Shown in pieces: positions 11,741-35,700 of a stretch of 64,000 nt of DNA. Position numbers and translations under genes: made by a program. Origin of the DNA: Auanema rhodensis (lineage: Eukaryota > Animalia > Nematoda); assembly GCA_964057225.1 (NCBI GenBank), contig OZ059896.1:13268001-13332000 (forward strand). The letters run 5' to 3'. Position 1 is the first letter of the stretch. Every line of letters starts with the position of its first letter. The notes beneath the pieces are model-generated. The model ran no database searches. It saw nothing but the letters and a program-made list of their open reading frames with translations, and was not told where the DNA came from.

Positions 11741-14700
11741 TTAGATTTCATTCGTGGAATGACGACTTATGGTTGTTCTTGTCACATTTCCTTCAGAATC
11801 AACAGTTTCTACTTGTTCTCCAAGCGATAACTCTCGTAATCGTGATTCATCTTCTGTTCCCGTAAATGCAACATGACATTTTACTGGGTCACGAACCTAC
11901 AATATTACAAATTAGTTGTTTTATCAATATACAGTTATAGTTTGTAATTATAATACTTACCCGTGTTTCTACTCTTCGCGTAATTTTCTTCATTGTTCCA
12001 TCAGCTTCTATAGATGTTGTTTCAAATGTGGTTAATGTTGTTGGATAACAAGCTAACATATTATCCATTTCACCTCCAAGTGAATCCTAAAATGATAAAT
12101 TGCATATATATTTTATTTTTTTAGGTGCTTACTTTGTCATCTTCATCATGATCTTGGTAGCTAGCTAGTGTTTCACCGCTAAGCATGCCTCGAGTTTCTT
12201 GACTAGCCATGTCTTGGCTAGCTCCTTCCAAGAGAGAATCTTTCTCGTTGGTTATATTTTCTAGAGAATCTCGGAAACTTTCTTGAAGTTTTGATTTGCT
12301 ATCATAATCTTCAAGAGATTCTTCCATGTCTTCGTTCTGGATTGCTCCTACTTGTAAGGAATCAGTGCTGGTCTCTAAATTAGAGCTGCATACATTAATT
12401 TGCTCTAATGAATCAGCTAGTGATGTTCCTATAGGCGTTCCTCTGTTACTATCTTGGTTTTGAACTCTTATTATGGTATCATTCTCTGTTTCATTCTCAT
12501 ATTCATCGTCATCACGGATACTCATATCCTCAGCTTCCGATTCTTCTTTTACTACCGATAACATCATTTCGTCTTGTGGTGAAAGATGATTAGGTCCTTG
12601 TGAGATTAACTCTTGTTCTAGTTTTTCAAACTCGGCTAAGGAGCTCACGCTTCCTTCGGCCGACCGAAGACGTGATGCTGCATACAATTCAATCTCACTT
12701 GATGTTAAGCTGTGATCACCTCTATTGGCTACCAGCTGTTCTAGTCTTTCGAATTCCTGGAGACTGTTCAATGATACATTATCACTTGATACATTACGAT
12801 ATTTTCCAACAAGAATCACTGTGTCTGATGGAACACCAACAGATGAATTTCCACTACCATTTATCGAGTCTGAGTCTTCAGCTTCTTCCTCAACTGTTTC
12901 CAGCTCACCATCTCCTTCGTTTTGTTCCATGAGGTTATCATTATAAAGAACAAATCCATCCTCTACATCCTCAGGCGTAAGCACCTGATCTTCAGCCATT
13001 TCGTTCATATCCTTAACAACTTGTGGCTCATGGCTTTCATCATCTCCAACGAATAATTGATTTTGGTTTTCAACGGCCGATGATGATTCTGGAGCTTCAA
13101 TTTCTAGATCTGACTCCAAAATAACATGCAGATGGTCATCCAGACGACCTCCAATAAGTTCTTCCCGACTTTGGCTAGCTAGAATTTCCAGCTTTTCTTG
13201 CAAATCTGATTGATAATCAACTTCATGCTCCATAGCAACCTCATTGTATGACTCTTGTTTCAAAAGTGGCTTATGGGAGTCTGTATCGGTAGGAAACGTA
13301 GATTGAGCTACAACTTCGTTCAGAAGTTCATCAGTTAACTCGGCTGAAAATTCTTCAACAACTACACCGCTATTGTCAAATACCTTCCATTCATCTTCCA
13401 AAACAAATTCAGATAACTCATCTATTTGAGCAGATGATATTAGTTCGACTACTTGCTTATCAGGTGAAGAGATAAGCTCGGATTCTTCACTGAATTTCAT
13501 TTTATTAACATTATCAAAGGCTTTTTCTTCCAACAAATGTAGCGATGCTTTACGTTCGTCGGTAGATTCAACAATGTGGGAAGGTTCTTCATAATATTTG
13601 TTTTGAACGCTAGAATCAAAAGTGTCTTCGTTTTCTGCGACAATCTTCTCGAAATCCTCGTGTACTGGAGAAACACACTCATTTACAATTTCTTCAAACT
13701 CTTCATAAGTAGTTTCTTCATTTTTCTCAATTACATTCTCCGCACCTCCCGACAGTACTTCATAACTGTCATCTAAACATGACTCTTCGGGAACAGAAGA
13801 AACATTCTTAGTAGACTTTTCAGTAGAAAGTTCAAGAGCATCCTGAGATTGACTCAATTCTTCATGAATAAGAGTTTTATGACCGTCAGTTGATTCAACG
13901 AGAGGAGATGTGTGTGAATGAACTTCTGAATGAACTGGGCTGCTTGAGAATAGATCGTGGTCTTCCACATATTCGTGCTGGGGTTGATCGAAGGTTGTTT
14001 CTGCTTTAGTTGGAACTGCAGGAGCAGTTTCGTCTTCTTCCGGTTGGAATGAGGCTTCACGAATCTTGGTCGAATCAACGATATGAGATGAACTTGATTC
14101 AGATCCTGACTTATAATAAGCATGGGGAACATCACGTTCCTCTCCTGATTCTTCGTTTTTCAGTTTTTCATATACAGCATGAGCACCAAGAGCTGCTAGC
14201 GCTACAGGTGCAGCAACTGCAGCTCCAGCAACAAGACCGGCTTTCTTCGTAAAGCCAAGCATTTTGTCAGTGAATTTCTCAGACTCTTCCTCTAGCACAG
14301 TTTCACTTTCGGGTTTTTCTCCAGAAGTTACATCGTCACCATATGCAGTCGATTCAATGATAGGAGATGTATGAGAATGAACTGAATGAACAGGGCTGCT
14401 TGAGATGAGATGATGGTCTTCCACATCTTCGTGCTGGGGTTGATCGAAGGTTGCTTCAACTTGAGTTGGAACTTCATGATCAGTTTCATCTTTTTCCGGT
14501 TGGAATGAGGTTTCATGAATCTCAGTTGCTTCGACGACATGAGATGTATGAGAGTGAACTTCTGAATGAGCAGGGCTGCTTGAGATGATATGGTGGTCTT
14601 CCACATCTTCATGTTCAGGTTGATCAAAGGTTGTTTCAACTTGAGTTGGAACTTCATGATCAGTTTCATCTTCTTCCGGTTGGAAGGAGGTTTCATGAAT

Positions 14701-17700
14701 CTCTGTTGTTTCAACGACATGAGATGTATGAGAATGAATTTCTGAATGAGCAGGGCTGCTTGAGATGGCATGGTGGTCTTCCACATCTTCATGTTCAGGT
14801 TGATCAAAGGTTGTTTCAGCTTGAGTTTGAACTTCATGAGCAGCTTCATCTTCTTCTGGTTGGAACGAGGTTTCATGAATCTCGGTCGATTCAACGATAT
14901 GAGATGTATGAGATTGAACTTCTGAATAAGCAGGGCTACTTGAGATGAGATGATGATCTTCCACATCTTCGTGTTCAGGTTGATCGAAGGTTGTTTCTGC
15001 TTGAGTTGTGACTGCAGGAGCAGTTTCATCTTCTTCCGGTTCGAATGAGGTTTCATGAATCTCAGTTGTTTCGACGACACGTGATGTATGAGAATGAATT
15101 TCTGAATGAGCAGGGCTGCTTGAGATGGCATGGTGGTCTTCCACATCTTCATGTTCAGGTTGATCAAAGGTTGTTTCAACTTGAGTTTGAACTTCATGAG
15201 CAGCTTCATCTTCTTCTGGTTGGAACGAGGTTTCATGAATCTCGGTCGATTCAACGATATGAGATGTATGAGATTGAACTTCTGAATGAGCAGGGCTACT
15301 TGAGATGAGATGATGATCTTCCACATCTTCGTGTTCAGGTTGATCGAAGGTTGTTTCTGCTTGAGTTGTGACTGCAGGAGCAGTTTCATCTTCTTCCGGT
15401 TGGAATGAGGTTTCATGAATCTCTGTTGTTTCAACGACATGAGATGTATGAGAATGAATTTCTGAATGAGCAGGGCTGCTTGAGATGACATGGTGGTCTT
15501 CCACATCTTTATGTTCAGGGTGATCAAAGGTTGTTTCTGCTTGAGTTGTGACTGCAGAGGCAGTTTCGTCTTCTTCTGGTTGGAATGAGGTTTCATGAAT
15601 CTCGGTCGATTCAACGATATGAGATGTATGAGATTGAACTTCTGAATGAGCAGGGCTACTTGAGATGAGATGATGATCTTCCACATCTTCATGTTCAGGG
15701 TGATCAATGGTTGTTTCTGCTTGAGTTGTGACTGCAGAGGCAGTTTGGTCTTCTTCTGGTTGGAATGAGGTTTCATGAATCTCGGTCGATTCAATGATAT
15801 CAGATGTATGAGATTGGACTTCTGAATGAGCAGGGCTGCTTGAGATGACATGGTGGTCTTCCACATCTTTATGTTCAGGGTGATCAAAGGTTGTTTCTGC
15901 TTGAGTTGTGACTGCAGAGGCAGTTTCATCTTCTTCCGGTTGGAATGAGGGCTCAGTTGTTTCGACGACATGAGATGTATGAGATTGGAATTCTGAATGA
16001 GCAGGGCTGCTTGAGATGACATGGTGGTCTTCCACATCTTCATGTTCAGGTTGATCAAAGGTTGTTTCAACTTGAGTTGGAACTTCATGATCAGTTTCAT
16101 CTTCTTGCGGTTGGAATGAGGGCTCAGTTGTTTCGACGACATGAGATATATGAGAGTGAACTTCTGAATGAGCAGGGCTGCTTGAGATGACATGGTGGTC
16201 TTCCACATCTTCATGTTCAGGTTGATCGAAGGTTGTTTCTGCTTGAGTTGTAACTGCAAAAGCAGTTTCGTCTTCTTCTGGTTGGAATGAGGTTTCATGA
16301 ATCTCGGTCGAATCAACGATATGAGATGTATGAGATTGGACTTCTGAATGAGCGGGGCTGCTTGAGATGAGATGGTGGTCTTCCACATCTTCATGTCCAG
16401 GTTGATTGAAGGTTGTTTCCGTTTGACCTGGAACTCGATCAAACGACTTTCTTGTTTCTTCAGATCTTGATTCATAAGAAGAGGATGAAACATCATGTTG
16501 CTCTCCTGATTCTTCGTTTTTCAGTTTTTCATATACAGCATGAGCACCAAGAGCTGCTAGCGCTACAGGTGAAGCAACTGCAGCTCCAGCAACAAAACCG
16601 GCTTTCTTCGCAAAACCAAGCATTTTGTCAGTGAATTTCTCAGATTCTTCCTCTACCACAGTTTCACTTTCGAGTTTTTCTCCAGAAGTTACATCGTCAC
16701 CATATTCAGTCGATTCAATGATATGTGATGTATGAGATTGGAATTCTGAATGAGCAGGGCTGCTTGAGATGATATGGTGGTCTTCCACATCCTCATGTTC
16801 AGGTTGATCAAAGCTTGTTTCAACTTGAGTTGGAACTTCATGAGCAGTTTCATCTTCTTCCGGTTGGAATGAGGTTTCATGAATCTCTGTTGTTTCGACG
16901 ACGTGAGATGTATGAGAGTGAACTTCTGAATGAGCAGGGCTGCTTGAGATGACATGGTGGTCTTCCACATCTTCATGTTCAGGTTGATCAAAGGTTGTTT
17001 CAACTTGAGTTGGAACTTCATGAGCAGTTTCATCTTCTTCCGGTTGGAATGAGGTTTCATGAATCTCAGTTGTTTCGACGACATGAGATGTATGAGATGG
17101 GACTTCTGAATGAGCGGGGCTGCTTGAGATGATATGGTGGTCATCCACATCTTCATGTTCAGGTTGATCGAAGGTTGTTTCTGCTTGAGTTGTGACTGCA
17201 GGAGCAGTTTCGTCTTCTTCTGGTTGGAATGAGGTTTCATGAATCTCGGTCGAATCAACGACATGAGATGTATGAGATGGGACTTCTGAATGAGCGGGGC
17301 TGCTTGAAATGAGATCATGGTCTTCCACATCTTCATGTTCAGGTTGATCGAAGGTTGCTTCTGGTTGAGGAGTAACTTCATGAGCAGTTTCATCTTCTTC
17401 CGGTTGGAATGAGGTTTCATGAGTCTCAGTTGTTTCGACGACGTGAGATGTATGAGAGTGAACTTCTGAATGAGCAGGGCTGCTTGAGATGACATGGTGG
17501 TCTTCCACATCTTCATGTTCAGGTTGATCGGAGGTTGCTTCTGGTTGAGTAGTAACAGCAGGAGCAGTTTCATCTTCTTCCGGTTGGAATGAGGTTTCAT
17601 GAGTCTCAGTTGTTTCAACGACATGGGATGTGTGAGAATGAACTTCTGAATGAGCTGGGCTACTTGAAATGAGATCATGGTCTTCCACATCTTCATGTTC

Positions 17701-20700
17701 AGGTTGATCGAAGGTTGCTTCTGGTTGAGGAGTAACTTCATGAGCAGTTTCATCTTCTTCCGGTTGGAATGAGGTTTCATGAGTCTCAGTTGTTTCGACG
17801 ACATGAGATGTATGAGAATGAATTTCGGAATGAGCTGGGCTGCTTGCAATGAGATCATGGTCTTCCACATCTTCATGTTCAGGTTGATCGAAGGTTGCTT
17901 CTGGTTGAGTAGTAACTGCAGGAGCAGTTTCATCTTCTTCCGGTTGGAATGAGGTTTCATGAGTCTCAGTTGTTTCGACGACGTGAGATGTATGAGAGTG
18001 AACTTCTGAATGAGCAGGGCTGCTTGAGATGACATGGTGGTCTTCCACATCTTCATGTTCAGGTTGTTCAAAGGTTGTTTCAACTTGAGTTGGAACTTCA
18101 TGATTAGTTTCATCTTCTTCCGGTTGGAATGAGGTTTCATGAGTCTCAGTTGTTTCGACGACGTGAGATGTATGAGAGTGAACTTCTGAATGAGCAGGGC
18201 TGCTTGAGATGACATGGTGGTCTTCCACATCTTCATGTTCAGGCTGATCAAAGGTTGTTTCAACTTGAGTTGGAACTTCATGATCAGTTTCTTCTTCTTC
18301 CGGTTGGAATGAGGTTTCATGAGTCTCAGTTGTATCGACGACGTGAGATGTATGAGAGTGAACTTCTGAATGAGTAGGGCTGCTTAAGATGGCATGGTGT
18401 TCTTCCACATCTTCATGCTGGGGTTGATCGAAGGTTGCTTCTGCTTGAGTTGGAACTCGATCAAACGACTTTCTTGTCTCTTCAGATCTTGATTCATAAG
18501 AAGATGATGACACATCATGTTCCTCTCCTGATTCTTCGTTTTTCAGTTTTTCATATACAGCATGAGCACCAAGAGCTGCTAGCGCTACAGGTGAAGCAAC
18601 TGCAGCTCCAGCAACAAGACCGGCTTTCTTCGCAAAGCCAAGCATTTTGTCAGTGAATTTCTCCGATTCTTCCTCTGCCACAATTTCACTCTCGGGTTTT
18701 TCTCCAGAAGCTTCATGGTCACCATATGCAGTCGATTCAACGATATGAGATGTATGAGATTGGACTTCTGAATGAGCGGGGCTGCTTGAGATGAAATGAT
18801 GCTCTTCCACATCTTCATGTTCAGGTTGATCGAAGGTTATTTCTGCTTGAGTTGTAACTGCAGAAGCAGTTTCGTCTTCTTCTGGTTGGAATGAGGTTTC
18901 ATGAATCTCAGTTGTTTCGACGACATGAGATGTATGAGAATGAATTTCGGAATGAGCTGGGCTGCTTGAAATGAGATCATGGTCTTCCACATCTTCATGC
19001 TCAGGTCGATCGAAGGTTGCTTCTGCTTGAGTTGTGACTGCAGAAGCAGTTTCATCTTCTTCTGGTTGGAATGAGGTTTCATGAATCTCGGTCGATTCAA
19101 CGATATGAGATGTATGAGAGTGAACTTCTGAATGAGCAGGGCTGCTTGAGATAATATGGTGGTCTTCCACATCTTCATGTTCAGGTTGATCGAAGGTTGT
19201 TTCTGCTTGAGTTGTGACTGCAGAAGCAGTTTCATCTTCTTCTGGTTGGAATGAGGTTTCATGAATCTCAGTTGTTTCGTCGACATGAGATGTATGAGAA
19301 TGAATTTCGGAATGAGCTGGGCTGCTTGAAATGAGATCATGCTCTTCCACATATTCGTGCTGGGGCTGATCGAAGGTTGTTTCAACTTGAGTTGGAACTG
19401 CAGGAGCAGTTTCATGAATCTCAGTTGTTTCGTCGACATGAGATGTATGAGAGTGAACTTCTGAATGAGCTGGGCTGCTTGAAATGAGATCATGGCCTTC
19501 CACATCTTCATGTTCAGGTTGATCGAAGGTTGTTTCTGCTTGAGTTGTGACTGCAGGAGCAGTTTCGTCTTCTTCTGGTTGGAATGAGGTTTCATGAATC
19601 TCGGTCGAATCAACGATATGAGATGTATGAGAGTGAACTTCTGAATGAGCAGGGCTGCTTGAGATGATATGGTGGTCTTCCACATCTTCATGTTCAGGTT
19701 GATCGAAGGTTGTTTCTGCTTGAGTTGTGACTGCAGGAGCAGTTTCGTCTTCTTCTGGTTGGAATGAGGTTTCATTAATCTCGGTCGAATCAACGATATG
19801 AGATGTATGAGAGTGAACTTCTGAATGAGCAGGGCTGCTTGAGATGATATGGTGGTCATCCACATCCTCATGTTCAGGTTGATCAAAGGTTGTTTTCGCT
19901 TGAGTTGTGACTGCAGGAGCAGTTTCGTCTTCTTCTGGTTGGAATGAGGTTTCATTAATCTCGGTCGAATCAACGATATGAGATGTATGAGAGTGAACTT
20001 CTGAATGAGCAGGGCTGCTTGAGATGATATGGTGGTCATCCACATCCTCATGTTCAGGTTGATCAAAGGTTGTTTCAACTTGAGTTGGAACTTCATGAGC
20101 AGTTTCATCTTCTTCCGGTTGGAATGAGGTTTCATGAATCTCTGTTGTTTCGACGACATGAGATGTATGAGATTGGACTTCTGAATGAGTGGGGCTGCTT
20201 GAGATGATATGGTGGTCTTCCACATCCTCATGTTCAGGTTGATCAAAGGTTGTTTTCGCTTGAGTTGTGACTGCAGGAGCAGTTTCGTCTTCTTCTGGTT
20301 GGAATGAGGTTTCATTAATCTCGGTCGAATCAACGATATGAGATATATGAGAGTGAACTTCTGAATGAGCAGGGCTGCTTGAGATGATATGGTGGTCATC
20401 CACATCCTCATGTTCAGGTTGATCAAAGGTTGTTTCAACTTGAGTTGGAACTTCATGAGCAGTTTCATCTTCTTCCGGTTGGAACGATGTTTCATGAATC
20501 TCTGTTGTTTCAACTACATGGGATGTGTGAGAATGAACTTCGGAATGAGCTGGGCTGCTTGAAATGAGATCATGGTCTTCCACATCTTCGTGTTGGGGTT
20601 GATCGAAGGTTGCTTCTGGTTGAGTTGTAACTGCAGGAGCTTTTTCATCTTCTTCCGGTTGGAATGAGGTTTCATGAATCTCAGTTGTTTCAACTACATG

Positions 20701-23700
20701 GGATGTGTGAGAATGAACTTCGGAATCAGCTGGGCTGCTTGGGATTACATGGTGGTCTTCCACATCTTCATGCTGGGGTTGATCGAAGGTTGCTTCTGCT
20801 TGAGTTGGAACTCGATCAAACGACTTTCCTCTCTCTTCAGATCTTGATTCATAAGAAGAGGATGAAACATCATGTTCCTCTCCTGATTCTTCGTTTTTCA
20901 GTTTTTCATATACAGCATGAGCACCAAGAGCTGCTAGCGCTACAGGTGAAGCAACTGCAGCTCCAGCAACAAGACCGGCTTTCTTCGCAAAGCCAAGCAT
21001 TTTGTCAGTGAATTTCTCCGATTCTTCCTCTGCCACAGTTTCACTTTCGGGTTTCTCTCCAGAAGTTACATCATCACCATATTCAGTCGAATCAACGACA
21101 TGAGATGTATGAGAGTGAACTTCTGAATGAGCTGGGCTGCTTGAAATGAGATCATGGTCTTCCACATCTTCATGTTCAGGTTGATCGAAGGTTGTTTCTG
21201 CTTGAGTTGTGACTGCAGGAGCAATTTCATCTTCTTCCGGTTCGAATGAGGTTTCATGAATCTCAGTTGTTTCGACGACATGAGATGTATGAGAATGAAT
21301 TTCTGAATGAGCAGGGCTGCTTGAGATGATATGGTGGTCTTCCACATCTTCATGTTCAGGTTGATCAAAGGTTGTTTCAACTTGAGTTGGAACTTCATGA
21401 TCAGTTTCATCTTCTTCCGGTTGGAATGAGGTTTCATGAATCTCTGTTGTTTCAACGACATGAGATGTATGAGAATGAATTTCTGAATGAGCAGGGCTGC
21501 TTGAGATGGCATGGTGGTCTTCCACATCTTCGTGCTCAGTTCGATCGAAGGTTGCTTCTGCTTGAGTTGTAACTGCAGGAGCAATTTCATCTTCTTCCGG
21601 TTCGAATGAGGTTTCATGAATCTCAGTTGTTTCAACTACATGGGATGTGTGAGATTGGACTTCTGAATGAGCGGGGCTGCTTGAGATGAAATCATGCTCT
21701 TCCACATCTTCATGTTCAGGTTGATCGAAGGTTGTTTCTGCTTGAGTTGTGACTGCAGGAGCAATTTCATCTTCTTCCGGTTCGAATGAGGTTTCATGAA
21801 TCTCAGTTGTTTCGACGACATGAGATGTATGAGAATGAATTTCTGAATGAGCAGGGCTGCTTGAGATGATATGGTGGTCTTCCACATCTTCATGTTCAGG
21901 TTGATCAAAGGTTGTTTCAACTTGAGTTGGAACTTCATGATCAGTTTCATCTTCTTCCGGTTGGAATGAGGTTTCATGAATCTCTGTTGTTTCAACGACA
22001 TGGGATGTGTGAGAATGAATTTCTGAATCAGCTAGGCTGCTTGAGATGAGGTCATGGTCTTCCACATCTTCATGCTCAGGTCGATCGAAGGTTGCTTCTG
22101 CTTGAGTTGTAACTGCAGGAGCAGCTTCATCTTCTTCCAGTTGGAATGAGGTTTGATGAATCTCAGTTGTTTCAACGACATGGGATGTGTGAGAATGAAT
22201 TTCTGAATGAGCAGGGCTGCTTGAGATGGCATGGTGGTCTTCCACATCTTCGTGCTCAGTTCGATCGAAGGTTGCTTCTGCTTGAGTTGTAACTGCAGGA
22301 GCAGCTTCATCTTCTTCCAGTTGGAATGAGGTTTCATGAATCTCAGTTGTTTCAACGACATGGGATGTGTGATAATGAACTTCTGAATGAGCTGGGCTGC
22401 TTGAAATAAGATCATGGTCTTCCACATCTTCATGCTCAGGTCGATCGAAGGTTGCTTCTGCTTGAGTTGTAACTTCATGAGCAGTTTCATCTTCTTCCGG
22501 TTGGAAAAAGGTTTCATGAATCTTAGTTGTTTCAACTACATGAGATGTATGAGAATCAACTTCTGAATGAGCTGGGCTGCTTGAGATGAGGTCATGGTCT
22601 TCCACATCTTCGTGCTGGGGTTGATCGAAGGTTGCTTCTGGTTGAGTTGGAACTGCAGGAGCAGTTTCATCTTCTTCCGGTTGGAACGATGTTTCATGAA
22701 TCTCAGTTGTTTCAACAACATGGGATGTATGAGAATCAACTTCTGAATGAGCAGGGCTGCTTGAGATCAGATCATGGTCTTCCACATCTTCATGCTCAGG
22801 TCGATCGAAGGTTGCTTCTGGTTGAGTTGTAACTGCAGGAGCTTTTTCATCTTCTTCAGGTTGGAATGAGGTTTCATGAATCTCAGTTGTTTCAACGACA
22901 TGAGATGCATGAGAATGAATTTCTGAATGAGCTGGGCTGCTTGAGATGATATGGTGGTCTTCCACATCTTCATGTTCAGGTTGATCAAAGGTTGTTTCAA
23001 CTTGAGTTGGAACTTCATGAGCAGTTTTATCTTCTTGCGGTTGGAATGAGGTTTCATGAATCTCAGTTGTTTCGACGACATGAGATGTATGAGAATCAAC
23101 TTCTGAATGAGCAGGGCTGCTTAAGATGACATGGTGTTCTTCCACATCTTCATGCTGGGGTTGATCGAAGGTTGCTTCTGCTTGAGTTGGAACTCGATCA
23201 AATGACTTTCTTGTCTCTTCAGATCTTGATTCATAAGAAGAGGATGAAACATCATGTTCCTCTCCTGATTCTTCGTTTTTCAGTTTTTCATATACAGCAT
23301 GAGCACCAAGAGCTGCTAGCGCTACAGGTGAAGCAACTGCAGCTCCAGCAACAAGACCGGCTTTCTTCGCAAAGCCAAGCATTTTGTCAGTGAATTTCTC
23401 CGATTCTTCCTCTGCCACAATTTCACTCTCGGGTTTTTCTCCAGAAGCTTCATCGTCACCATATGCAGTCGATTCAACGATATGAGATGTATGAGAATGA
23501 ATTTCTGAATGAGCTGGGCTGCTTGAGATGAGATCATGTTCTTCCACATCTTCATGTTCAGGTTGATCGAAGGTTGCTTCTGGTTGAGTAGTAACTGCAG
23601 GAGCAGTTTCATCTTCTTCCGGTTGGAACGATGTTTCATGAATCTCAGTTGTTTCAACGACATGGGATGTATGAGAATGAATTTCTGAATGAGCTGGGCT

Positions 23701-26700
23701 GCTTGAGATGATATGGTGGTCTTCCACATCGTCATGCTCAGGTTGATCGAAGGTTGTTTCTGCTTGAGTTGTAACTGCAGGAGCAGTTTCATCTTCTTTC
23801 GGTTGGAATGAGGTTTCATGAATCTCGGTCGATTCAACGATATGAGGTGTATGAGATTGGACTTCTAAATGAGCTGGGCTGCTTGAGATGAGATCATGTT
23901 CTTCCACATCTTCATGTTCAGGTTGATCGAAGGTTGCTTCTGGTTGAGTAGTAACTGCAGGAGCAGTTTCATCTTCTTCCGGTTGGAACGATGTTTCATG
24001 AATCTCAGTTGTTTCAACGACATGGGATGTGTGAGAGTGAACTTCTGAATGAGCTGGGCTGCTTGAAATGAGATCATGGGCTTCCACATCTTCGTGCTGG
24101 GGTTGATCGAAGGTTGCTTTTGGTTGAGTTGTAACTTCATGAGCAGTTTCATCTTCTTTCGGTTGGAATGAGGTTTCATGAATCTCGGTCGATTCAACGA
24201 TATGAGGTGTATGAGATTGGACTTCTGAATGAGCTGGGCTGCTTGCGATGAGATCATGTTCTTCCACATCTTCATGTTCAGGTTGATCGAAGGTTGCTTC
24301 TGGTTGAGTAGTAACTTCATGAGCAGTTTCATCTTCTTCAGGTTGGAATGTGGTTTCATGAATCTCAGTTGTTTCAACGACATGGGATGTGTGAGAGTGA
24401 ACTTCTGAATGAGCTGGGCTGCTTGAAATGAGATCATGCTCTTCCACATATTCGTGCTGGGGCTGATCGAAGGTTGTTTCAACTTGAGTTGGAACTGCAG
24501 GAGCAGTTTCATGAATCTCAGTTGTTTCAACGATATGAGATGTATGAGAGTGAACTTCTGAATGAGCGGGGCTGCTTGAGATGATATGGTGACCTTCCAC
24601 ATCTTCATGCTCAGATTGATCGAAAGTTGTTTCAACTTGAGTTGGAACTTCATGAGCAGTTTCATCTTCTTCCGGTTGGAACGATGTTTCATGAATCTCA
24701 GTTGTTTCAACGATATGAGATGTATGAGAGTGAACTTCTGAATGAGCGGGGCTGCTTGAGATGATGTGGTGGTCTTCCACATCTTCATGCTCAGATTGAT
24801 CGAAAGTTGTTTCAACTTGAGTTGGAACTTGATGAGCAGTTTCATCTTCTTCTGGTTGGAATGAGGTTTCATGAATATCGGTCGAATCAACGACATGGGA
24901 TGTGTGAGAATGAATTTCTGAATGAGCTGGGCTGCTTGAGATGAGATCATGTTCTTCCACATCTTCATGTTCAGGTTGATCGAAGGTTGCTTCTAGTTGA
25001 GTAGTAACTGCAGGAGCAGTTTCATCTTCTTCCGGTTGGAACGATGTTTCATGAATCTCAGTTGTTTCAACGACATGGGATGTGTGAGAATGAATTTCTG
25101 AATGAGCTGGGCTGCTTGAGATGAGATCATGTTCTTCCACATCTTCATGTTCAGGTTGATCGAAGGTTGCTTCTAGTTGAGTAGTAACTGCAGGAGCAGT
25201 TTCATCTTCTTCCGGTTGGAACGATGTTTCATGAATCTCAGTTGTTTCAACGACATGGGATGTATGAGAATGAATTTCTGAATGAGCTGGGCTGCCTGAG
25301 ATGAGGTCATGGTCTTCCACATCTTCGTGCTCAGGTCGATCGAAGGTTGCTTCTGCTTGAGTTGTAACTTCATGAGCAGTTTCATCTTCTTCTGGTTGGA
25401 ATGAGGTTTCATGAATATCGGTCGAATCAACGATATGAGATGTATGAGAATGAATTTCTGAATGAGCTGGGCTGCTTGAAATGAGATCTTGGTTTTCCAC
25501 ATCTTCATGCTCAGGTTGATCGAAGGTTGCTTTTGGTTGAGTTGTAACTTCATGAGCAGTTTCATCTTCTTCCGGTTGGAAAGAGGTTTCATAAATCTCA
25601 GTTGTTTCAACTACATGAGATGTATGAGAATGAATTTCTGAATGAGCTGGGCTGCTTGAAATGAGATCTTGGTCTTCCACATCTTCATGCTCAGATTGAT
25701 CGAAAGTTGTTTCAACTTTAGTTGGAGCTTCATGAGCAGTTTCATCTTCTTCCGGTTGGAATGAGGTTTCATGAGTCTCAGTTGTTTCGACGACATGAGA
25801 TGTATGAGAATCAACTTCTGAATGAGCAGGGCTGCTTAAGATGGCATGGTGTTGTTCCACATCTTCATGCTGGGGTTGATCGAAGGTTGCTTCTGCTTGA
25901 GTTGGAACTCGATCAAACGACTTTCTTGTCTCTTCAGATCTTGATTCATAAGAAGAGGATGAAACATCATGTTCCTCTCCTGATTCTTCGTTTTTCAGTT
26001 TTTCATATGCAGCATGAGCACCAAGAGCTGCTAGCGCTACAGGTGAAGCAACTGCAGCTCCAGCAACAAGACCGGCTTTCTTCGTAAAGCCAAGCATTTT
26101 GTCAGTGAATTTCTCAGATTCTTCTTCTTCCACATTATCATTTTCAGTTAGAGCTGCTGGAACTTCAGTGTTGCTTACTTCTGCGATTCTTTTCTCAATT
26201 CCCATATCAGTTTTTCTTTCGGTCTTTTCTCCAGAAGCTACAGTTTCATATTCAGTTGATTCAACGACTTGAGATGTATGAGAATGAATTTGTGAATGAG
26301 CTAGGCTGCTGGGCGTATCTTCATGCTCAGGTTGATCGAAGGTCGTTTCAGATTGAGTTGGAACTTCATCGAATGACTTTCTTGTCTCTTCAGATGTTGA
26401 TTCATATGTAGTGTGGGGCACATCTCGTTTCATTTTTAATTTTTCGTCTCCTTCTGAAGGAATTGCTTTTTCAGCTGCAATATCGGCTTTGTTTGCAAGA
26501 TCCAGTTGTAGGTTAGAGTTTTCCTCTCTATGTTCTAATGTTGATATTATATTTTCCTGGGTAATGGTTTTGACCTGTTGTTTCTTCACTTCTGCTGTAG
26601 CAATTTCGTATGTAGAGGGCTTTAATGGCTCTAAATCTGCATCATTGTTTTGATCCTCGAAGCTACTTTCGTATTCATTCACAGAAGCAGGAGTTAACTG

Positions 26701-29700
26701 AATATCTTTTTTTGCTTCGAATTTTGCTATACGATCTTTCACAGAAACCACAGTTTCATCGGAGTCTGAAAATAAAAACATTATTATGTTGATTTCAAAT
26801 ATAAATTTTTGTAACAACTTGTAACAAACTTCAAAGATTTAAATATCACACTAGCTTTTTTATTGACTAATTTCATATTCGCTATAATACGTACTAAATA
26901 AATTTCTTAAAGTTCCTTTTTATTCTGTTTTTCAAGATTTAAATATTTTGCTAACTATTAGATATTTATATATTTATATATAAATAAATAATAATTAAAT
27001 AAATAGGTTTCTTTCTTTTTATTTTTTGGTCTTTGTTTGGATCTCAGTTTACTTTTTTTGTAATTCTGAACCACTAATTCAGAACTAAGAACTTGACTTT
27101 AATTTCTCAGTTTGCTTTTTGATATTACTGTTTGAATGAATGAAAGATTTTATTTTTAATTAATAATAATTATAATGTTCGAATTTCATATTTTTTCAAA
27201 TTTCTAATATAAGTTCCAATTTCTATTGCAATCGTAGTCTATTATTTTGATCTTGTGCTATTTCTTTTATTTTGAGATCATTCAGTTGTAAATGAAATAT
27301 GAAAATATTAAGATGTTTCATGAAGTAAATATACTATTTTTCTGTTTTTACAGATTATTATATGAAGTTTTTTTTCAGAACAATGCATACGATATTAATT
27401 AAAAACCAATACTAAAGCTAGTGTGACATTTTAAATCCACTTTCAGTCATATATCCAAGTGTTGAGCCCTTACTCACCATCGTTAGGTGTTTGTTCGGAA
27501 TCTCCTGAAACTAACAAATATACTGCGAACATAAAATAAAAATATTCAAATAATATTGATTTTTCCTTTTTCATAAAAATCTCAAATCGAATGTTAACTC
27601 TCACCAGGAAGAGTTGTTCGGGTGGTTGTAACAACTCGCGTCATCTTCTTTGATACAACAACGCTGCCATCTTCATTTGTGAATCCTTCTTCTGCTGTTT
27701 CTTTCTTTTGAGTGGTGCCTGCAATTTTTTGAATAATAGCATATTTCTCGATGATTCAATCAATTCAATCTAATGAGTACAGATATTTACAGGAACAATC
27801 TACGGTTTACAACGATCGATATCTTATAAAACTTACCACTGTCAGCTGTTGGGTCCGATGTAGCAGATGCTGAAACAATAGATAAAGTTATATATACATC
27901 GAATATAATTAAATGTTTAAGATTTCAATTTTACTTTATGCAAAACTTAAAAGAGCAAGATTCAATATTAGCAACGTTTTTCAATTCTACAACAAACTAT
28001 TGAATGGCATACTCAAACTGTCCAACATTTGCTGATGAAGTTCACGAATTTTTCCAGTATCCAATCCAACCATTCCAGGAGTTTCAGTTTCATATACGGT
28101 TTTCGTTGTTGTTGTATGACGACTTTGGTTTACACGAATTTGAACATCGCGTCCTGGGCCGGCAATAGATAGAGCTTCTGCTACGGCATTGGACACTGCT
28201 GGATCAGCAGGAGTAACAGCTCCTGCGACTCTGAGCTCGGCTTCCAAATCTTTTAGGCGTTGGACGGCATTCTCATGTTGTGTGGGGGCTGACATTTGTA
28301 GTTCGCGTAATGTGAAAAGAAGGTTAGACAGTACTTTTTCTGCTTCTCCACAATTAGGATTAGACTGCGATTCAGTTTCTTGAGTTGGGAAACATGAAAT
28401 CTTCTGGATATCTTGATGGTCTTTAATGTCAAGATGATCTTCTTCTTCAGCTTCAAGCAATGGAGCCTGTGGAACTGTTGGGTGGAAAAAGTGAACCAGA
28501 GGTATACCTTTGGGGTCCACGTTGAGCAATGCAGCTGCTAGTGAAGCACTTCGTTCTCTCTCGAACTGGCCGCTGCTAGCGATGGGCGTGTCATCCTCAG
28601 TGTCAGTCGTATCTTGGTGATGCAAATGTGGATGATCAAATGATGTTAGCAACGATGGAATATCTTCAACCTCTGTTTCAGCGTGTTCACCAGACCAGGA
28701 CTCTGCTTCGAAAGTTGTTGGCTTTTCCATCTGAACTCTTGTAGTGGAAATAACATTATCGTTCAAACTAGATGAAGGAGTCGAGGAATCAGAAGATGTG
28801 GAGATAACTCCTCCATACAATAGTTGGCCATTAGCAGAGAGGCCGAATACAACAGGTAACGACGACATCAGGAATTGAACTGGCTAGCGAAACAGCTGAC
28901 AGAACCCAAGCATTGCTGCTTTAACAAAATCCAATGAAGAGGCGGAGATTCTCTTCATTCTGTCTGCTCCACAAATAACACTTATTATGATACAACCTGT
29001 CTCTTCCGTTTTCTTATTCTTTCACAGCCTTTGAACTCCTTCATTCTCAACTTTACACATAATGTTGTGAGAAACATCATACGACGGACGCAGCTGGATA
29101 ACATACAGAAAACTTACTCAAAACGATAAAATAGAAAGAAGCTTTAAGTTTATTTAAAAAATCCTTAATATAGCTTTAGCTATCAAAATCCTAGCGTTGA
29201 TAACAGGTAAAATCAGTTGTAAAAATGAAAACGCTGCTAACCTTGAACTTGCTAATTTTGAACCTATTTTTATACGAGAAATCAATTCTATCGACATATA
29301 AAATATTAAAAATAAAGTTTGGGTACTTGTTAATTAGTTACGACATAAATAGTGAATGTGGCATAAGCTAGTGTGTGGTAACTTACAAATTATGCGTGAT
29401 TTGATGCGCGAGCTAAAAATGGAAAAAAGAGAATGACATAATCTTGTCACACGGGTCTCAGAGCGAGCTTGAAATGTACGAATACGGTGTAAGTGCAAAA
29501 AGTGTTTTGCTTATTCAAGAAACTGCAGATGCTAACTAATACAGTGAAGATAGTCAAACATATCAGAATAATTAATACGGATGAACAGCATCATAGACAT
29601 GAGAGGTTTATTTCTTTTATCGGCTACCTTGTTGTTCACTTCCATCCTGATCTGATAGCTCATCTTGATTAGTTCCTGCATGATTGTCAGTGGTAGTTGG

Positions 29701-32700
29701 TTCTGGAATTGTAGCGTTTTAGCTTCGCAAACAGATTAATGAATCGAAAGTAACATATTGATTTTACATATCTAAACTAATTAACAGGTTATGCTAAGCT
29801 AGATGAACTTCAACAGGTTATGTGTTAAGTGTGCTATGCCGAAGTATTCAAAATATATTGCAAGAGGCATTCAAAGAACAAAAGAAAAGAGAAAACTAAC
29901 CGTTTTCAGTGTCAGTGATGTGGCTTAAAACAGTTGTGACAGTAGTTACAATAGTACCATCATCTTCTTGATGTTGTTCTTTTTCGATGTGTTGATCCAC
30001 TTTGGCAGGTACATCCACATTTTCTGGATCTTTACCAGCTGCGAAGTCTTCTTCAGCCAAACGATTTAGTTCTTGCCATCTAAGTGAAGAAGAATTAATA
30101 CAAATACTTTAATAATAATAATGACAAATATTTATCTCTAAACATACTTGGTTTGTTCCTCTTCATTTAATGGTACACGTCGATCAACGATATTTTCATT
30201 AACCGCTACATCATCTTCATATGTTGTAGTTATTGTCCGTTCTTCGACAATTGGCCCTTGATCAGTGTCATGTACATGACGTTCAGTTCGAACAACTGTT
30301 CGAATTTCAGAAATTGGTTCTGAAAATTGTAAATAACACCTTATATTGTTTTTATTCTGCCAACCTTCCTCTTCTGGAATTGGATGGTTCAGAGACTCAT
30401 TCGTCTCAGAATATGACACAGGCTCGGCTTGTTCTAACTGAGGTACCGGTCCTTCTTTTGCAACCCCAGTGTCAGATTTGGAAGCAAATGCGGTACTTTC
30501 TTCCACTACGTTTTCTTTAATGGGCATTTTAAGAGGTGTAGAAGATGAGACATCGGCTAATTTAGCAGTTTCAAATTGCTTCGATGATGGTGAATCAGAT
30601 CCAAAATTCAATGTATCTGTATCACCATGAGCAATACTACGAACAATATCATCTCGACCGATTCTACGAAGAGCAGAATCGAGATTTTCTTCTGAAAATT
30701 AAAAGAAATAAAGAAAAAAACCAAAAGGAAACACACGATTAGCGTCTGTCTTCTTCAAGTGAATCCAGATCTTTAAAACGTGAGGCAATTCTTTTCCTGG
30801 GTAGTTTTGACGGATGTGCTGGATATCTCTATGCGGCAATTCTAACGCGCGAGCTAAACGAGACCAATCTGGCCCAACTGCTTTCAGTACATTACTATGA
30901 ACAAAAACAGGAAGTTCCTAAAAAAAAGAGAAAATGAGAAGATACATTTTCATCAAAATATACCTCATCAAATGCTCCTTTGTATTTTTCATTAAATGGT
31001 GTAACATCTTGTTTGCTTACAGCTGGAATATCACTTCCATATTCCGGAAGAGTTACCGCTAATGTGCATATAGGTGACTGAGGAGCCAACGAATCAGATC
31101 GCAACTTAGGTTCTTTCATGAATGATATGCGTCCTTCCGTAACTACTTCGGTGTTATCCTTATTCTTTGTCTGAAAACGGAAAATTGTACTTATATAATA
31201 AAAAATGGCATACTTTGATCATGAAAGCCAATCTGTTCTCTTGGAAAGGAATGAAATACAGGCTGAGCTGGTCCCCGCTCTTTGTAACAGGCATGAGATT
31301 TCCAGAAAATTCCAAAAATTGATGCTTGCCTTTCAGAACTTCAACATCCTTAGATTTAGCGATTAACTTGAAATGTTCCTGCTTTTCCAAGGTCTTATCT
31401 TCCTTATCATCTGTCATACAGAATACTCGTAACTGTCCTTCAATAGGGAAAGTACGACGAGCGAATATAGCAAATTTAGCCATGTATGGAATACTAATAG
31501 CTTCGTTGTATACTTCTTGAGCCATACGCGCAGCATCACGAGGTGTTTGACAATCCATAAGCCAGAAGCGAGCAGAGACGGTAGTTGTAAAATTAACTTC
31601 ATCTCCAGTAAAAGTTAACTGTGTTGTTCCAGTAATATCCTCCCATTGTGCTGGGGCTGAACCACCGGTGATAGAGCACAAAAGACGCAATGTAGGCGGT
31701 TCCTGTCCTGGTTGTCCTGAATACTGAGTTAGCATACCCTTATTACTACTCTGTGGGAGAGGGATGCAAAGAGTAATGGGCTTGTGGAATTTCCTTCTTC
31801 GTGGCTCAACGGTTACGATTGGAGAAACCGCAACACGATTACCATGCAAACGAGTAACCATTTCTTGAGGCACTGGTTGCGCTTGGACTGATACCTTGAT
31901 GGTCTTAGTTAACGATCCATCAGGGAAAATGGCTTGGACTCTGGGAACCACAGAAGACATTATAACTCCTCCTTCAGGTCCAACACAGTGCACTTCTTGC
32001 CTTACTCTTGTAACAACGGCGAAGTACATGGGAAAATCATTCGTTAGAATTCGAGTTATACGAGGTGTGTGTAAGTCGTCTAGTTGAGCCAACTCTTCCG
32101 CATCGAAAGATTCGTTCAAAACTTCTTGCACAGCATCTTCTGTTGCTTCCAACTGATGTTCTTTCCAATGTTGTCCATCATCAGATCGGAGAATGACAAT
32201 TTCTCTTTCGCGATCTCGAAGCGAAGCAAAGTGCGGCACCTCTAATATGACAGGACCGAGGAATTTGGCACCTGCTGGAGCCATTTCTAAAATACGTGAA
32301 GCTAATTCTTCACCTTCACTCAATGGTGGTGGATGAGCTAATTTTTCCTAAAAATGTATATAAAAGGAAGGAAATGAACAAAGAAAAACTACCTTCCTCA
32401 AATATCGACAGGTAACACGAACTGGTTGCGCTGCTTTTCTGGGAGGAACGATAATGCGAACACCAGAATGCCGGCATCCTCGCATTGCTCCTCCTCTTGC
32501 GTCCACAAGGAATGATATAAGGAATCTGAAATGGATCCCATAATAAAGAAAATGAAAAGAAAATGTGAATTTTCCACAAACAACTACAAAGACACCAGAC
32601 ACAAATTTCAACACTTCAACCGCCAGAGAATATTTAAAAACTGTTTTAACCAGTTTTTAGTAAAGCATTCGTGCTTAGCGAGGGGTGGAAAGAACAAAAA

Positions 32701-35700
32701 TGAGAAGCAGTGGCAATGTGGAGCAACCAACTTGTTCCTTCTTATGCAACCATTTGTAGATTAGTGAGTTTGTCATCCATTATCAGATATCCATCTATCC
32801 AAATGCCAATGCTTCAGATTTTGATAAAGGGTTTTCTCGGCGGTTGACGTATTGACATCAGAAAGAGATTTTTAAGCAATATTTGCAATAGAAAATTTAA
32901 AGAAAGAGCGGAAAAAACTAGAAATAGGAAAGTCTACATAGGTATATCTCTATAAGAGTTACATAGGAAAATTGGTAATATTATACAATATATATACATA
33001 TATATTGAACAAGAGACAACAATACTTACGTCTTGTGCTGCAGCTTGCTGGAAGAAAATAAAAATATTGAACAAAATGTTATGTAAATGGTTCGTGAGAA
33101 TCAAAGTTTATAAAATTTATAAGCAAAAACCCATATGTTTGAACAAATGATTCTCAAACGGCATGTGTGCATACAAATCTCTCATACATCAGCATACTCT
33201 AGTTAGATTTTAGAAATGTTATTGTAAAATCAACATAGATAATTTTAAAAATAAATAAGAAAACATACCTTGGTTGAGCTACATTATGTCCAATAGGAAT
33301 GTTATCATTAATAGTATTATTCATTACAGATTCATCATGAGTTGCAGTTCCTGCGGCTGCAGCATAGAGTGGCTGATTCTAAAAAAAGCAGTTGGTTACA
33401 AAACTCAAAACTAAAATAAGTAGAAACTCAAATACTTACCTGTGCTTTTCTGATTAGCTCGTCTAAGTTATCATTAGCATGAGTACTAGGAGCAAGTTGC
33501 ATTCCATCAAGCTCAGCGCTTTTCGATAATAACTAAAAGCAATGATAGATGGCGGGCATTCAAGTATATAGTAAACCTGTTCACCAGTATGAATCATATG
33601 AACTCCAGTAGAATCCGATAAACCTTGTGTTAGATGATCCGAAAAGTCTTTCATATGAGCATTAACAGTCTGGAAATCAATTAGAGAATTATAATATTTT
33701 ATAGATTTCTTAAGAATACGATATGACAACATACTTCATGTTCAGCTGCTTGTCCTTCGTCCTCACTTTCAGAGAACATAGTTTCATTCATTCCTTCCGG
33801 ATTTTGTGGTTTGTAACGTTCGTCTGTTACTGTAGTAGTTTCTGTGATGACAGTTGTTTCCGTCACTGTTTTCAGTGTTTCAACCACTGATACATATCCT
33901 AGCCTTTGCGCAATAGACAAAGGAGTTTGTCCAGTCTGTAAATAGCAAAGTAATACACTAAGAAAAAGTTCTCTTACAGCAGTTTGAGCATTTGGAGAAG
34001 CTCCATTTTCCAATAAGAACTTCACACAATGATTATGACCTTGCTGAGCGGCTTGATGCAGAGGTGTGTAACTAGCCCTTGTCACCTCACCAACATGAGC
34101 ACCTCGTTCAACAAGGAACTTGACCTGCAATAAATAAATAAATTAAATAATATGAATACATTTGTAGAAACAAACCATATTTAATTGACCGAAATGACAT
34201 GCAACATGCAATGGGGTATACCCCGCATTAGTTTGACTGTTAATATCTGCTCCATGATTGGCCTGTAAGAAATTCAAGTTTAAATAGAATAAGTATGTGG
34301 CAACTTACTAATTCTTCAGCCACAGAAACATGGTCTTCTTGAGCACATAAATGCATAGCCGTCAAGCCATTGTTAGCTTTAGCTCCTACATTTGAGCCAC
34401 TTTCAATAAGAAGACCAGAAATCTCACGATGACCTTCTTGGGCAGCCAAATGAAGTGGAGTGAAGCCAGCTCGTGATTTAGCATTTGGATCAGCGTTGAA
34501 TTGAAGCAAAGTACTGGCGATTTCCATTTGATTTTTTTTAGCGGCAATATGAAGCGGGGTATATCCATTTTTGGCAGCAGCTTTAGCAGATGCACCTTTT
34601 TCCAGAAGAAGCATAGCGACCTAAAACTTAATTTACAAACCTTTATTTTAAAAATAACTCACTTTGTCATTATTATAGTGAGCAGCAACATGAAGAGGTG
34701 TAACTTGGTTCTTTCCTTCAACATCTACCGGACAACCTCTATCCAACAAAAGCTTCACTACATCTACATTTCCATACTTAGAAGCCAAATGAAGAGGTGT
34801 GAAGCCCTTTTTGGTTAACACAGACATTTCTGCTTTGTGGTCCAGAAGTATATGAGCAACTTCTTCCTGACCCTCCTGCAAATCACAAGATCAGAACGAT
34901 TAGTGTGCTTTAAACGAACTTTAGCAGCTATATGCAGCGAAGTGTACTGATCTCTGGTAGCAGCGTTTGGATTAGCACCAGCTTGTAAAAGCAAAACTAC
35001 GATATCGGTATTACCAAGACGACTGGCAATATGAAGAGGAGTCTGAAGTTCACGAGCCTGAGCGTCAACCTGAAAAATTAAAAATATTTTAAATTTAGTT
35101 ATCAAGTCATTACCTTTGCTCCATTTCTTATTAACACCCGAACAACATCAGTTTGATTTGCACGTGCTGCAAGATGAAGAGGTGTTTCACCACGCACAGT
35201 GGCAACATCAGCATTGGCTCCCTTTTGAGCAATTAAGTAAGAGGAAAAAAATTATTAGAGATACCTGCTGAAGTAAATAAATAACAATATTGATTGCTCC
35301 CATAAATGATGCGACGTGTAGAGGTGACAACCCAGACTCAGTAGTAGCTTCGATAGCCGCATGATATTTCAAAAGCAATTCAACAACCTAAAACAAAGTA
35401 TAAGGATCTCCTTGAATATTTCATAATGTTGTAAAATGAAAACAGCAAAGAATAAATAATTCGCAAAGAAGATATTTCGAATGGAAATCTCACCTTGATT
35501 CTATTTTTCTTACAAGCGATATGAAGAGGCGTAAAGCCATTTAAAGCTCGAGCATTTGGATCTGCACTACGATCCAATAACAATTTAGCGACGCGAACAT
35601 GTCCACAATGGGCTGCTACATGAAGTGGTGTTAAGTAATCCACTGTTACATCATCTACAGGTGCACGATGATATAACAAAATCCTGGCAGAATCTACATG

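Follow-up and report, generated by a model that had tools for sequence, protein, structure and literature searches.

Our results identify the stretch as the long exon of the sole ankyrin gene of the nematode Auanema rhodensis, the orthologue of C. elegans unc-44. We put the probability of this reading at roughly 85%, a figure that spans the identity of the gene, its AO13-like architecture and the mode of evolution of its repeat array together. Giant ankyrins organise axons, and the role of their huge low-complexity exons is poorly understood. The exon described here is an unusually clean natural variant, insofar as it combines the spacers and the tail of UNC-44 with a different and far more regular repeat. 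Four things are demonstrated directly: its anatomy, which gene it belongs to, that its spacers and tail have homologues, and how its sequence evolves. Expression by analogy with the orthologue would make it a neuron-type exon, and the splicing predicted for it draws on the assembly and on homology. All positions are those of the window, the whole 64,000-nt stretch of contig OZ059896.1 that was analysed.

On the minus strand a single open frame of 4898 codons occupies positions 12121-26817, and the long exon within it is bounded by canonical nematode splice sites, as read from the sequence (acceptor TTTTCAG, donor AAA/GTAAGC). The frame is unbroken over 4878 codons, linking N- and C-terminal parts that both have homologues. 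Exons encoding ANK, ZU5, UPA and death domains all lie upstream on the same strand, and approximately 3.9 kb separate the death-domain exon from the start of the long exon. Domain models were run against individual exons:

33699-35733, minus strand: ankyrin-repeat exons (Ank, Ank_2 and related models, E down to 1e-27)
31160-32323, minus strand: ZU5/UPA exon (UPA_2 E = 3e-37, ZU5 E = 3.5e-20)
30702-30917, minus strand: exon with the first part of the death domain (PF00531, E = 2.1e-8)
12133-26765, minus strand: giant ankyrin (unc-44-type) long exon, 14,633 nt (open reading frame and splice sites; both termini match orthologues in frame)
12133-13872, minus strand: unique acidic C-terminal part of the long exon, kept in other nematode giant ankyrins
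11961-12086, minus strand: small exon after the long exon (DSLGGEMD...TTLTTFETT...RRVETR), matching orthologue C-termini
11741-11896, minus strand: final coding exon including the stop codon (sequence reading)

The PF00531 match in 30702-30917, at 34.6 bits, exceeds the cut-off of 22.6; the death domain is interrupted by an intron, and the end of the UPA domain gave a weak match in 30898-31200. The tail is 44-62% identical to giant ankyrins of Caenorhabditis, Mesorhabditis, filarial worms and strongylids. It has one match in the 181-Mb genome, and the six matches of the spacer are all inside the long exon. The upstream domain exons and the homology of the tail thus bear out the preliminary description, which had named a giant ankyrin exon. 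When the whole 4898-residue frame was compared with Pfam, no family was matched. Long exons of protostome giant ankyrins are rich in Ser and Glu (about 25%), as well as in Thr, Asp, Lys and Pro (Jegla 2016). The present composition (E 17.8, S 12.5, T 12.0, H 11.8, V 8.0, D 7.4, P 6.2%) fits in that Ser and Glu make up 30%, and departs in its high His content and near absence of Lys.

A profile derived from the repeat itself resolved 60 units of 180 nt (60 residues) in five blocks of 14, 12, 12, 10 and 12. Each block opens with a unit of 63 residues, continues with interior units of 60 residues and closes with a truncated one. Glu, Ser, Thr and His are abundant in the unit, each copy of which contains 16 acidic and nine His residues but no basic ones, and TRF returned periods of 180 and 360. 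Blocks are divided by spacers with the motif KFTDKMLGF, which starts at residues 236, 1141, 1935, 2720, 3394 and 4181 (window positions 26112, 23397, 21015, 18660, 16638 and 14277, minus strand). Spacer cores were delimited by hydropathy and comparison of copies, and blocks by the unit profile:

26242-26400, minus strand: degenerate unit upstream of spacer 1, array edge (42 bits; interior units score 103-119)
26017-26076, minus strand: hydrophobic core of spacer 1, an edge copy, more diverged (20 residues, Ala/Gly/Val-rich with a central Pro)
23455-25953, minus strand: block 1, 14 units, residues 289-1121; unit 9 has a 27-nt deletion
23302-23361, minus strand: hydrophobic core of spacer 2
21073-23238, minus strand: block 2, 12 units, residues 1194-1915; free of indels, holds a 540-nt duplication
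20920-20979, minus strand: hydrophobic core of spacer 3
18715-20856, minus strand: block 3, 12 units, residues 1988-2701; unit 9 shares the 27-nt deletion of block 1
18565-18624, minus strand: hydrophobic core of spacer 4
16696-18501, minus strand: block 4, 10 units, residues 2773-3374; free of indels
16543-16602, minus strand: hydrophobic core of spacer 5
14335-16479, minus strand: block 5, 12 units, residues 3447-4161; 360-nt duplications
14182-14241, minus strand: hydrophobic core of spacer 6, an edge copy, most diverged
13873-14142, minus strand: one to two degenerate units downstream of spacer 6, array edge

The six spacers are the sole hydropathy peaks of the exon, with 19-residue Kyte-Doolittle means of 1.8-2.0 against -0.95 for the remainder. 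The distances from spacer to spacer (2715, 2382, 2355, 2022 and 2361 nt) are exactly those reported in the preliminary description, and its rule holds: each equals 222 + n x 180, with n = 14, 12, 12, 10 and 12, minus 27, 0, 27, 0 and 21 nt. Its two-level array likewise stands, the second level being a junction module of last unit, spacer and first unit that occurs in six copies. A half-unit duplication inside the 60-residue unit was sought and was not significant (P = 0.13), and descent of the unit from two ancestral units of ~28 residues was rejected on that result.

The arrangement of blocks and hydrophobic segments has been known from C. elegans since 2002, and the exon is a new example of it, not a new kind. 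UNC-44 AO13 consists of repeat blocks divided by copies of a conserved hydrophobic segment (Otsuka 2002); He 2020 (PMC7159925) counts seven hydrophobic domains and six STEP blocks in it. According to Table S4 of Jegla 2016, the corresponding C. elegans exon lies downstream of the death domain, measures 14,974 bp, and contains 44 repeats of about 27 residues and seven repeats of 60 residues with the same hydrophobic motif. The parallel that had been drawn with UNC-44 extends to a single ankyrin gene, a long exon of similar size after the death domain, acidic Ser/Thr/Glu-rich repeats cut into blocks by the same motif, a conserved acidic tail, two small terminal exons and a repeat headed by HVVETT. 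The differences are that A. rhodensis has six spacers and five full blocks where C. elegans has seven and six, and that its unit is regular, 60 residues long and His-rich (His 11.8%, Pro 6.2%), whereas the Caenorhabditis unit is a Pro-rich stretch of ~27 residues with Thr runs and variable linkers; HMMER detects no homology between the two. Drosophila Ank2-XL also carries a satellite-like coding array encoding an acidic low-complexity peptide in a giant exon past the death domain. That array comprises 93-94 copies of 76 residues, or 228 bp (Stephan 2015, as cited in Jegla 2016), and is named 'Sat-228' in PMC13439713; it differs in its unrelated unit, in having no hydrophobic spacers and in its single level of repetition. 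In the sea urchin ankyrin, a long exon past the death domain encodes an acidic unit of 60 residues 12-16 times over (Jegla 2016, Table S4), but these copies are unrelated in sequence, few, and without block structure, and the equal unit length is most likely a coincidence.

The age of the array was less well served by the preliminary description, which held that the units are near-identical even at synonymous sites and that the whole array was recently homogenised. Mean nucleotide identity among 47 full units is 88%, with a p-distance of 0.19 at third positions versus 0.08 at positions 1 and 2. By the Nei-Gojobori method, dS between units has a mean and a median of 0.32: the units are not near-identical at such sites, and recent homogenisation of the array as a whole is not supported. 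Few copies are recent: dS falls below 0.05 in 0.5% of pairs, and its median between nearest neighbours is 0.096. With dN at 0.085, the ratio is 0.27, and purifying selection acts on the unit peptide. In the junction modules, dS is 0-0.09 among the first five copies, and interior copies are 93-99% identical in nucleotides, edge copies 75-87%.

Mosaic units, short identical tracts and decayed edges, the marks of copies that exchange sequence, are all present. The four-gamete test was failed by 316 of 630 informative site pairs, and failures rose with distance, from 31% at 20 nt or less to 61% at 60 nt or more. Interior units showed no positional homology between blocks (0.8743 vs 0.8735, P = 0.44); they form a single mixed mosaic pool, and this observation is modestly new. 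Two larger duplications reported earlier are real, one at a lag of 360 nt (14655-15178 vs 15015-15538, 96.4% identity) and one at a lag of 540 nt (21092-21513 vs 21632-22053, 95.7%, at least 97% in its core). Further duplications occur at lags of 180, 720, 1080 and 1260, also from block to block, and one unit pair in block 2 is 100% identical. Tracts of near-identity span merely 250-520 nt, within and between blocks. We read the array as evolving in the manner of a coding tandem repeat: unequal exchange copies one to seven units per event, and short-tract gene conversion mixes variants among units inside and across blocks. The six junction modules are held almost identical to one another, and the array edges decay. 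The closest orthologues compared are distant (57-62% identity in the tail), and turnover rates are consequently not datable.

It had also been claimed that every indel preserves the reading frame. This is true, but the evidence behind it is thin. The ninth units of blocks 1 and 3 are 95.6% identical against a background of 88%, and their 27-nt deletions are therefore one lesion in two copies; block 5 contributes a 9-nt deletion in two neighbouring units and a 3-nt deletion in its last unit. As a result, three independent events are left. Selection on the frame is in any case necessary because the conserved tail follows, and a frameshift would split the conserved N- and C-terminal parts of an exon that is essential.

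We considered whether the layout with several spacers was amplified separately here and in Caenorhabditis from a single ancestral module of spacer plus repeat. The spacer motif is present in six copies in Caenorhabditis sp. 36, five in C. tropicalis and one in Mesorhabditis, and also in Parelaphostrongylus; filarial proteins likewise have one spacer each, as separate amplification would predict. Spacer copies are nearly identical within species and different between species, those of A. rhodensis and Caenorhabditis sp. 36 forming separate clades (support 99/97). Such clustering by species is a concerted-evolution pattern, in itself modestly new, and independent amplification would give the same pattern. 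Thus, of the earlier proposal of concerted evolution, the clustering of spacers and the mosaic nature of units stand, but an independent recent amplification explains the identity of the spacers equally well. Units between spacers, moreover, cannot be aligned between lineages, one hexapeptide excepted. Against this scenario, two fragments of Auanema sp. JU1783 carry two clearly diverged spacers, suggesting that multiple spacers can be old, and three Caenorhabditis species with 5-7 spacers each have species-specific substitutions, so that repeated amplification or homogenisation would be needed. In addition, the array interior is not young, given its dS of 0.32. Separate amplification is a tentative alternative, with appreciably less than even odds, to an orthologous exon whose array evolves by exchange among its copies.

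The hexapeptide is the HVVETT head of the unit, and it qualifies the earlier statement that the unit sequence turns over. Apart from this head, no relative of the 60-residue His-rich unit was detectable among 1.84 billion proteins. A word search with one block as query gave no match at E <= 0.001, and an exhaustive HMMER search with a spacer plus 12 units gave four matches, all to spacers, and one spurious repeat protein (P0009). Turnover is supported to that extent; the head, however, is common to the Caenorhabditis STEP repeat. An unbiased 5-mer scan against Caenorhabditis repeats found HVVET and VVETT in both (13-18 matches vs 1.15 expected). When a profile of 37 Caenorhabditis repeat cores was applied to the units, HVVETT alone was matched, at a marginal 2.8 bits reached by 8 of 500 shuffles. 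The STEP repeat unit VETTTTTTVTREF..PE...SPVPSE did not align with the 60-residue unit outside HVVETT. Judged by these searches, a unit without detectable relatives beyond its head is a modestly new element.

The preliminary description went further, and proposed that recent homogenisation combined with a selected block length (~670-900 residues) makes the exon a molecular ruler and a coding VNTR polymorphic among strains. The per-block unit counts are indeed alike, several duplications are 96-100% identical, and the length of the exon is near that of C. elegans (14,633 vs 14,974 nt). Jegla 2016 quotes a proposal that the Drosophila Ank2-XL repeats, too, act as a spacer or ruler; the same source reports that a fraction of that array is enough for function. 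Uniform unit counts, however, need no selection on length because duplicated blocks inherit their length, and the divergence of the units speaks against recency. A ruler would keep equal block length across species despite sequence change. The intervals are 674-905 aa in A. rhodensis, 166, 701, 693, 491 and 636 aa in Caenorhabditis sp. 36, and 551, 638, 628 and 766 aa in C. tropicalis, thus ranging from 166 to 905 aa overall and from 166 to 766 aa in the orthologues, with one to seven spacers. Orthologous proteins of two Caenorhabditis species measure 3992 and 4581 residues. Block length is hence not conserved, the length ruler gains no support from the exon, and we regard the combined proposal as improbable.

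By analogy with C. elegans, the exon would provide the giant isoform with a long tether, disordered and negatively charged, that connects the membrane-spectrin cortex to microtubules, and its hydrophobic segments may contact the membrane. AlphaFold2 on the spacer region (9-row alignment) returned one long helix at low confidence (pLDDT 51), which is not informative on membrane insertion. A more elaborate functional layout is conceivable, if rather doubtful. In it, Pro-centred hydrophobic segments would enter the inner leaflet every 500-900 residues and pin acidic, His-rich loops as a polyanionic brush, each loop being headed by a ligand motif of the HVVETT type, and loop size and metal or pH response being tuned per lineage. 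The target of selection would in that case be spacing and the number of motifs, not sequence.

An assembly artefact, with the copy number or order of units expanded or collapsed, is very unlikely. A 12-kb tandem array of 180-nt units could invite one, but the longest tracts of at least 96% identity are ~520 nt, short enough for reads a few kb long to be placed uniquely; the genome is in 112 contigs for 181 Mb, the window contains no N, and the frame runs intact between homologous parts. Errors of whole units may still occur.

The exon opens no new question. What it does offer is a division between the parts that are conserved across lineages, namely the spacer, the tail, the short HVVETT head motif and the acidity, and those that are free to vary, namely everything else in the unit, its length, and the number and length of blocks. 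This split helps to pick parts for mutation in C. elegans. The closest available orthologous exon is that of Parelaphostrongylus, situated on a 492-kb contig.

The long exon of the A. rhodensis unc-44-type gene is a new and very regular example of a known architecture. The layout of C. elegans UNC-44 AO13 was already known, and is restated in PMC7159925. There the long exon spans 14,974 bp, lies 3' of the death domain and contains 44 repeats of ~27 residues together with seven repeats of 60 residues, the latter being equivalent to the hydrophobic spacer (Jegla et al. 2016, PMC5135030); C. elegans UNC-44 thus has seven spacers, whereas the A. rhodensis exon has six. Repeat arrays occur in some long exons only, and recognisable repeats are common to very closely related species only (PMC5135030). 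The Drosophila Ank2 array, in which a 228-bp unit is present 93-94 times, was even detected as a satellite, Sat-228 (PMC13439713). A literature search combining "giant ankyrin" and "concerted evolution" returned no paper arguing concerted evolution for ankyrin.

A single open frame of 4898 codons occupies 12121-26817 on the minus strand of the window. Since a nematode-type acceptor (TTTTCAG) places the first exon base at 26765 and a donor (AAA/GTAAGC) places the last at 12133, the long exon measures 14,633 nt. The exons associated with it are as follows.

12086-11961, minus strand: small exon 3' of the long exon, matched to the C-termini of orthologues
11896-11741, minus strand: second small exon, matched to the C-termini of orthologues
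33699-35733, minus strand: ankyrin-repeat exons, upstream of the long exon
31160-32323, minus strand: ZU5/UPA exon, upstream of the long exon
30702-30917, minus strand: death-domain exon, upstream of the long exon (Pfam Death, E = 2.1e-8)

The orthologue C-termini are matched by the end of the long exon and the two small exons taken together; the ankyrin-repeat, ZU5/UPA and death-domain exons were searched singly, not as one spliced model. In the 181-Mb, 112-contig assembly the tail (the unique C-terminal part of the long exon) has one match and the spacer has six, every one within the long exon.

The spacer motif, KFTDKMLGF, starts at residues 236, 1141, 1935, 2720, 3394 and 4181. The preliminary description had measured the spacer-to-spacer distances as 2715, 2382, 2355, 2022 and 2361 nt with 14, 12, 12, 10 and 12 units, and both sets of numbers were reproduced, the latter with a unit profile; the observation itself is real. 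In the aligned unit map each block opens with a special 63-residue unit and closes with a truncated unit directly before the spacer, which is why distances of the form 222 + n x 180 fit. The 360-nt and 540-nt duplications reported earlier are present, as are about a dozen others with lags of 180 to 1260 nt, some of them between blocks. The indels were said to preserve frame, and they do, but they reduce to three events once repeated copies are merged: a 27-nt deletion in a pair of copies whose identity (95.6%) exceeds the 88% background, a 9-nt deletion in two neighbouring units, and a lone 3-nt deletion. Units at both ends of the array are degenerate.

On this strand the +1 frame likewise contains long open frames (367-722 codons), located within the repeat blocks and broken near the spacers:

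14328-16496, 16689-18320, 18837-20513 and 23865-24968, minus strand: +1-frame open frames

They are expected, because a repeat unit can by chance be without stops in a second frame, and they are no evidence of a second gene.

The array had been described as recently homogenised, with units near-identical even at synonymous sites. Our results support neither statement. Among the 47 full-length units mean identity is 88% (range 79-100%), and third positions hold 2.3 times as many differences as first and second positions. Unit pairs have a mean dN of 0.085 and a mean dS of 0.32 (Nei-Gojobori); just 0.5% of pairs fall below a dS of 0.05, and the median dS between nearest neighbours is 0.096. Consequently, the array represents an old pool of units whose peptide is under purifying selection, with scattered recent local duplications, rather than a newly homogenised satellite. 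The junction modules, each consisting of a last unit, a spacer and a first unit, differ from the units in this respect: interior copies share 93-99% nucleotide identity and dS among the first five modules is 0-0.09, while the first and last modules show 75-87% identity.

Several lines of evidence bear on how the array has evolved. First, tracts of near-identity span just 250-520 nt and connect units both within and between blocks. Secondly, the four-gamete test is failed by 316 of 630 pairs of informative sites, with failure rising from 31% of pairs at most 20 nt apart to 61% of those at least 60 nt apart, and units are therefore mosaics from exchange with tracts shorter than one unit. Thirdly, interior units showed no positional homology between blocks (0.8743 versus 0.8735, permutation P = 0.44). 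Together with the decayed ends, short tracts, mosaicism and absent positional homology are the usual signature of unequal exchange and gene conversion in a tandem array. A tree of the spacer copies clusters them by species, with 99/97 support.

The preliminary description further proposed that block length is conserved across nematodes, which would make the exon a length-selected molecular ruler and probably a length-polymorphic coding VNTR. The tail matches giant ankyrins of Caenorhabditis sp. 36 and C. tropicalis at 52% and those of Mesorhabditis and filarial worms at 44-46%, its nearest matches being strongylid fragments (57-62%). Among available sequences the nearest orthologous exon is that of the strongylid Parelaphostrongylus tenuis, on the contig with genes KIN20_021853 to KIN20_021858. 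The hydrophobic spacer is kept across the worms compared, but its copy number and spacing are not. Caenorhabditis sp. 36 has six spacers at intervals of 166, 701, 693, 491 and 636 residues, C. tropicalis has five at 551, 638, 628 and 766 residues, Mesorhabditis has one, and two filarial proteins have one degenerate spacer apiece. Spacer number and intervals thus vary widely between species, contrary to the claim of a conserved block length. The similar unit counts of the five A. rhodensis blocks are expected from block duplication without selection, and, with block length and number variable between species, these sequence comparisons do not support a ruler function selected for length. Lineage-specific tuning of block length is conceivable.

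In Auanema sp. JU1783, two protein fragments bear two clearly distinct spacers. These fragments, P0010 and P0012, overlap by 30 residues on contigs of 0.8-1.5 kb, so that their join is uncertain; if truly contiguous, they place two diverged spacers just ~300 residues apart. A SH(V/L)IE..SEY motif precedes each JU1783 spacer, resembling the last unit of every A. rhodensis block.

Neither a word search nor an exhaustive HMMER run against 1.84 billion representatives recovered a relative of the 60-residue unit; apart from spacer matches, the HMMER run gave just one spurious repeat protein. HVVETT begins both the A. rhodensis unit and the STEP repeat, the S/T/E/P-rich repeat of Caenorhabditis. When the 70 commonest 5-mers of the array were scanned without bias against Caenorhabditis repeat regions, almost solely HVVET and VVETT emerged (13-18 hits, where 1.15 were expected and 300 shuffles gave at most 6). 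A looser motif (H, two aliphatic residues, E/D/Q, S/T/A, S/T/Q/E) also occurs in Mesorhabditis and the JU1783 fragments. However, this recurrence should be taken as suggestive and not as proof, since the pattern was set after the sequences were inspected and repeats are non-independent trials. Profile comparison of the HVVETT-type sharing was marginal.

Each unit contains 16 Asp/Glu, nine His and no Lys/Arg, and the repeat region is acidic and strongly hydrophilic (mean hydropathy -0.95). Within the long exon, the six spacers alone form hydrophobic peaks (1.8-2.0, 19-residue window). In the repeat region (protein residues 289-4161, window 14335-25953) 11.8% of residues are His, against 4.8% in that of Caenorhabditis sp. 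36 and less than 4.5% in C. tropicalis. In C. elegans the giant isoform connects the cortical spectrin-ankyrin layer with microtubules by way of UNC-119 and UNC-33 (PMC7159925). By homology, the neuronal giant isoform of A. rhodensis would include the long exon and would tie the cortical spectrin-ankyrin layer to microtubules, the repeat region most likely serving as a disordered polyanionic tether. Nine His beside sixteen acidic residues per unit could confer sensitivity to metal or pH. AlphaFold2 gave only a low-confidence helix for the spacer region; the spacers may cross the membrane, dip into it or merely touch it.

The interval from the death domain to the long exon contains two minus-strand exons, 27597-27755 and 27990-28883, strongly conserved with Caenorhabditis sp. 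36; they belong to a conserved region of nematode giant ankyrins that carries no name. A neighbouring gene, downstream of the ankyrin gene, has sorting-nexin-type PXA-domain exons (2100-2782, minus strand). Upstream of the detected ankyrin-repeat exons, a purine-rich minisatellite at 41013-43269 (14-nt unit AAAGTTATAGAGAG, ~156 copies, 68% match, higher-order periodicity at 295 and 398 nt) is the cause of the extreme GC skew and AT skew found at 40-44 kb.
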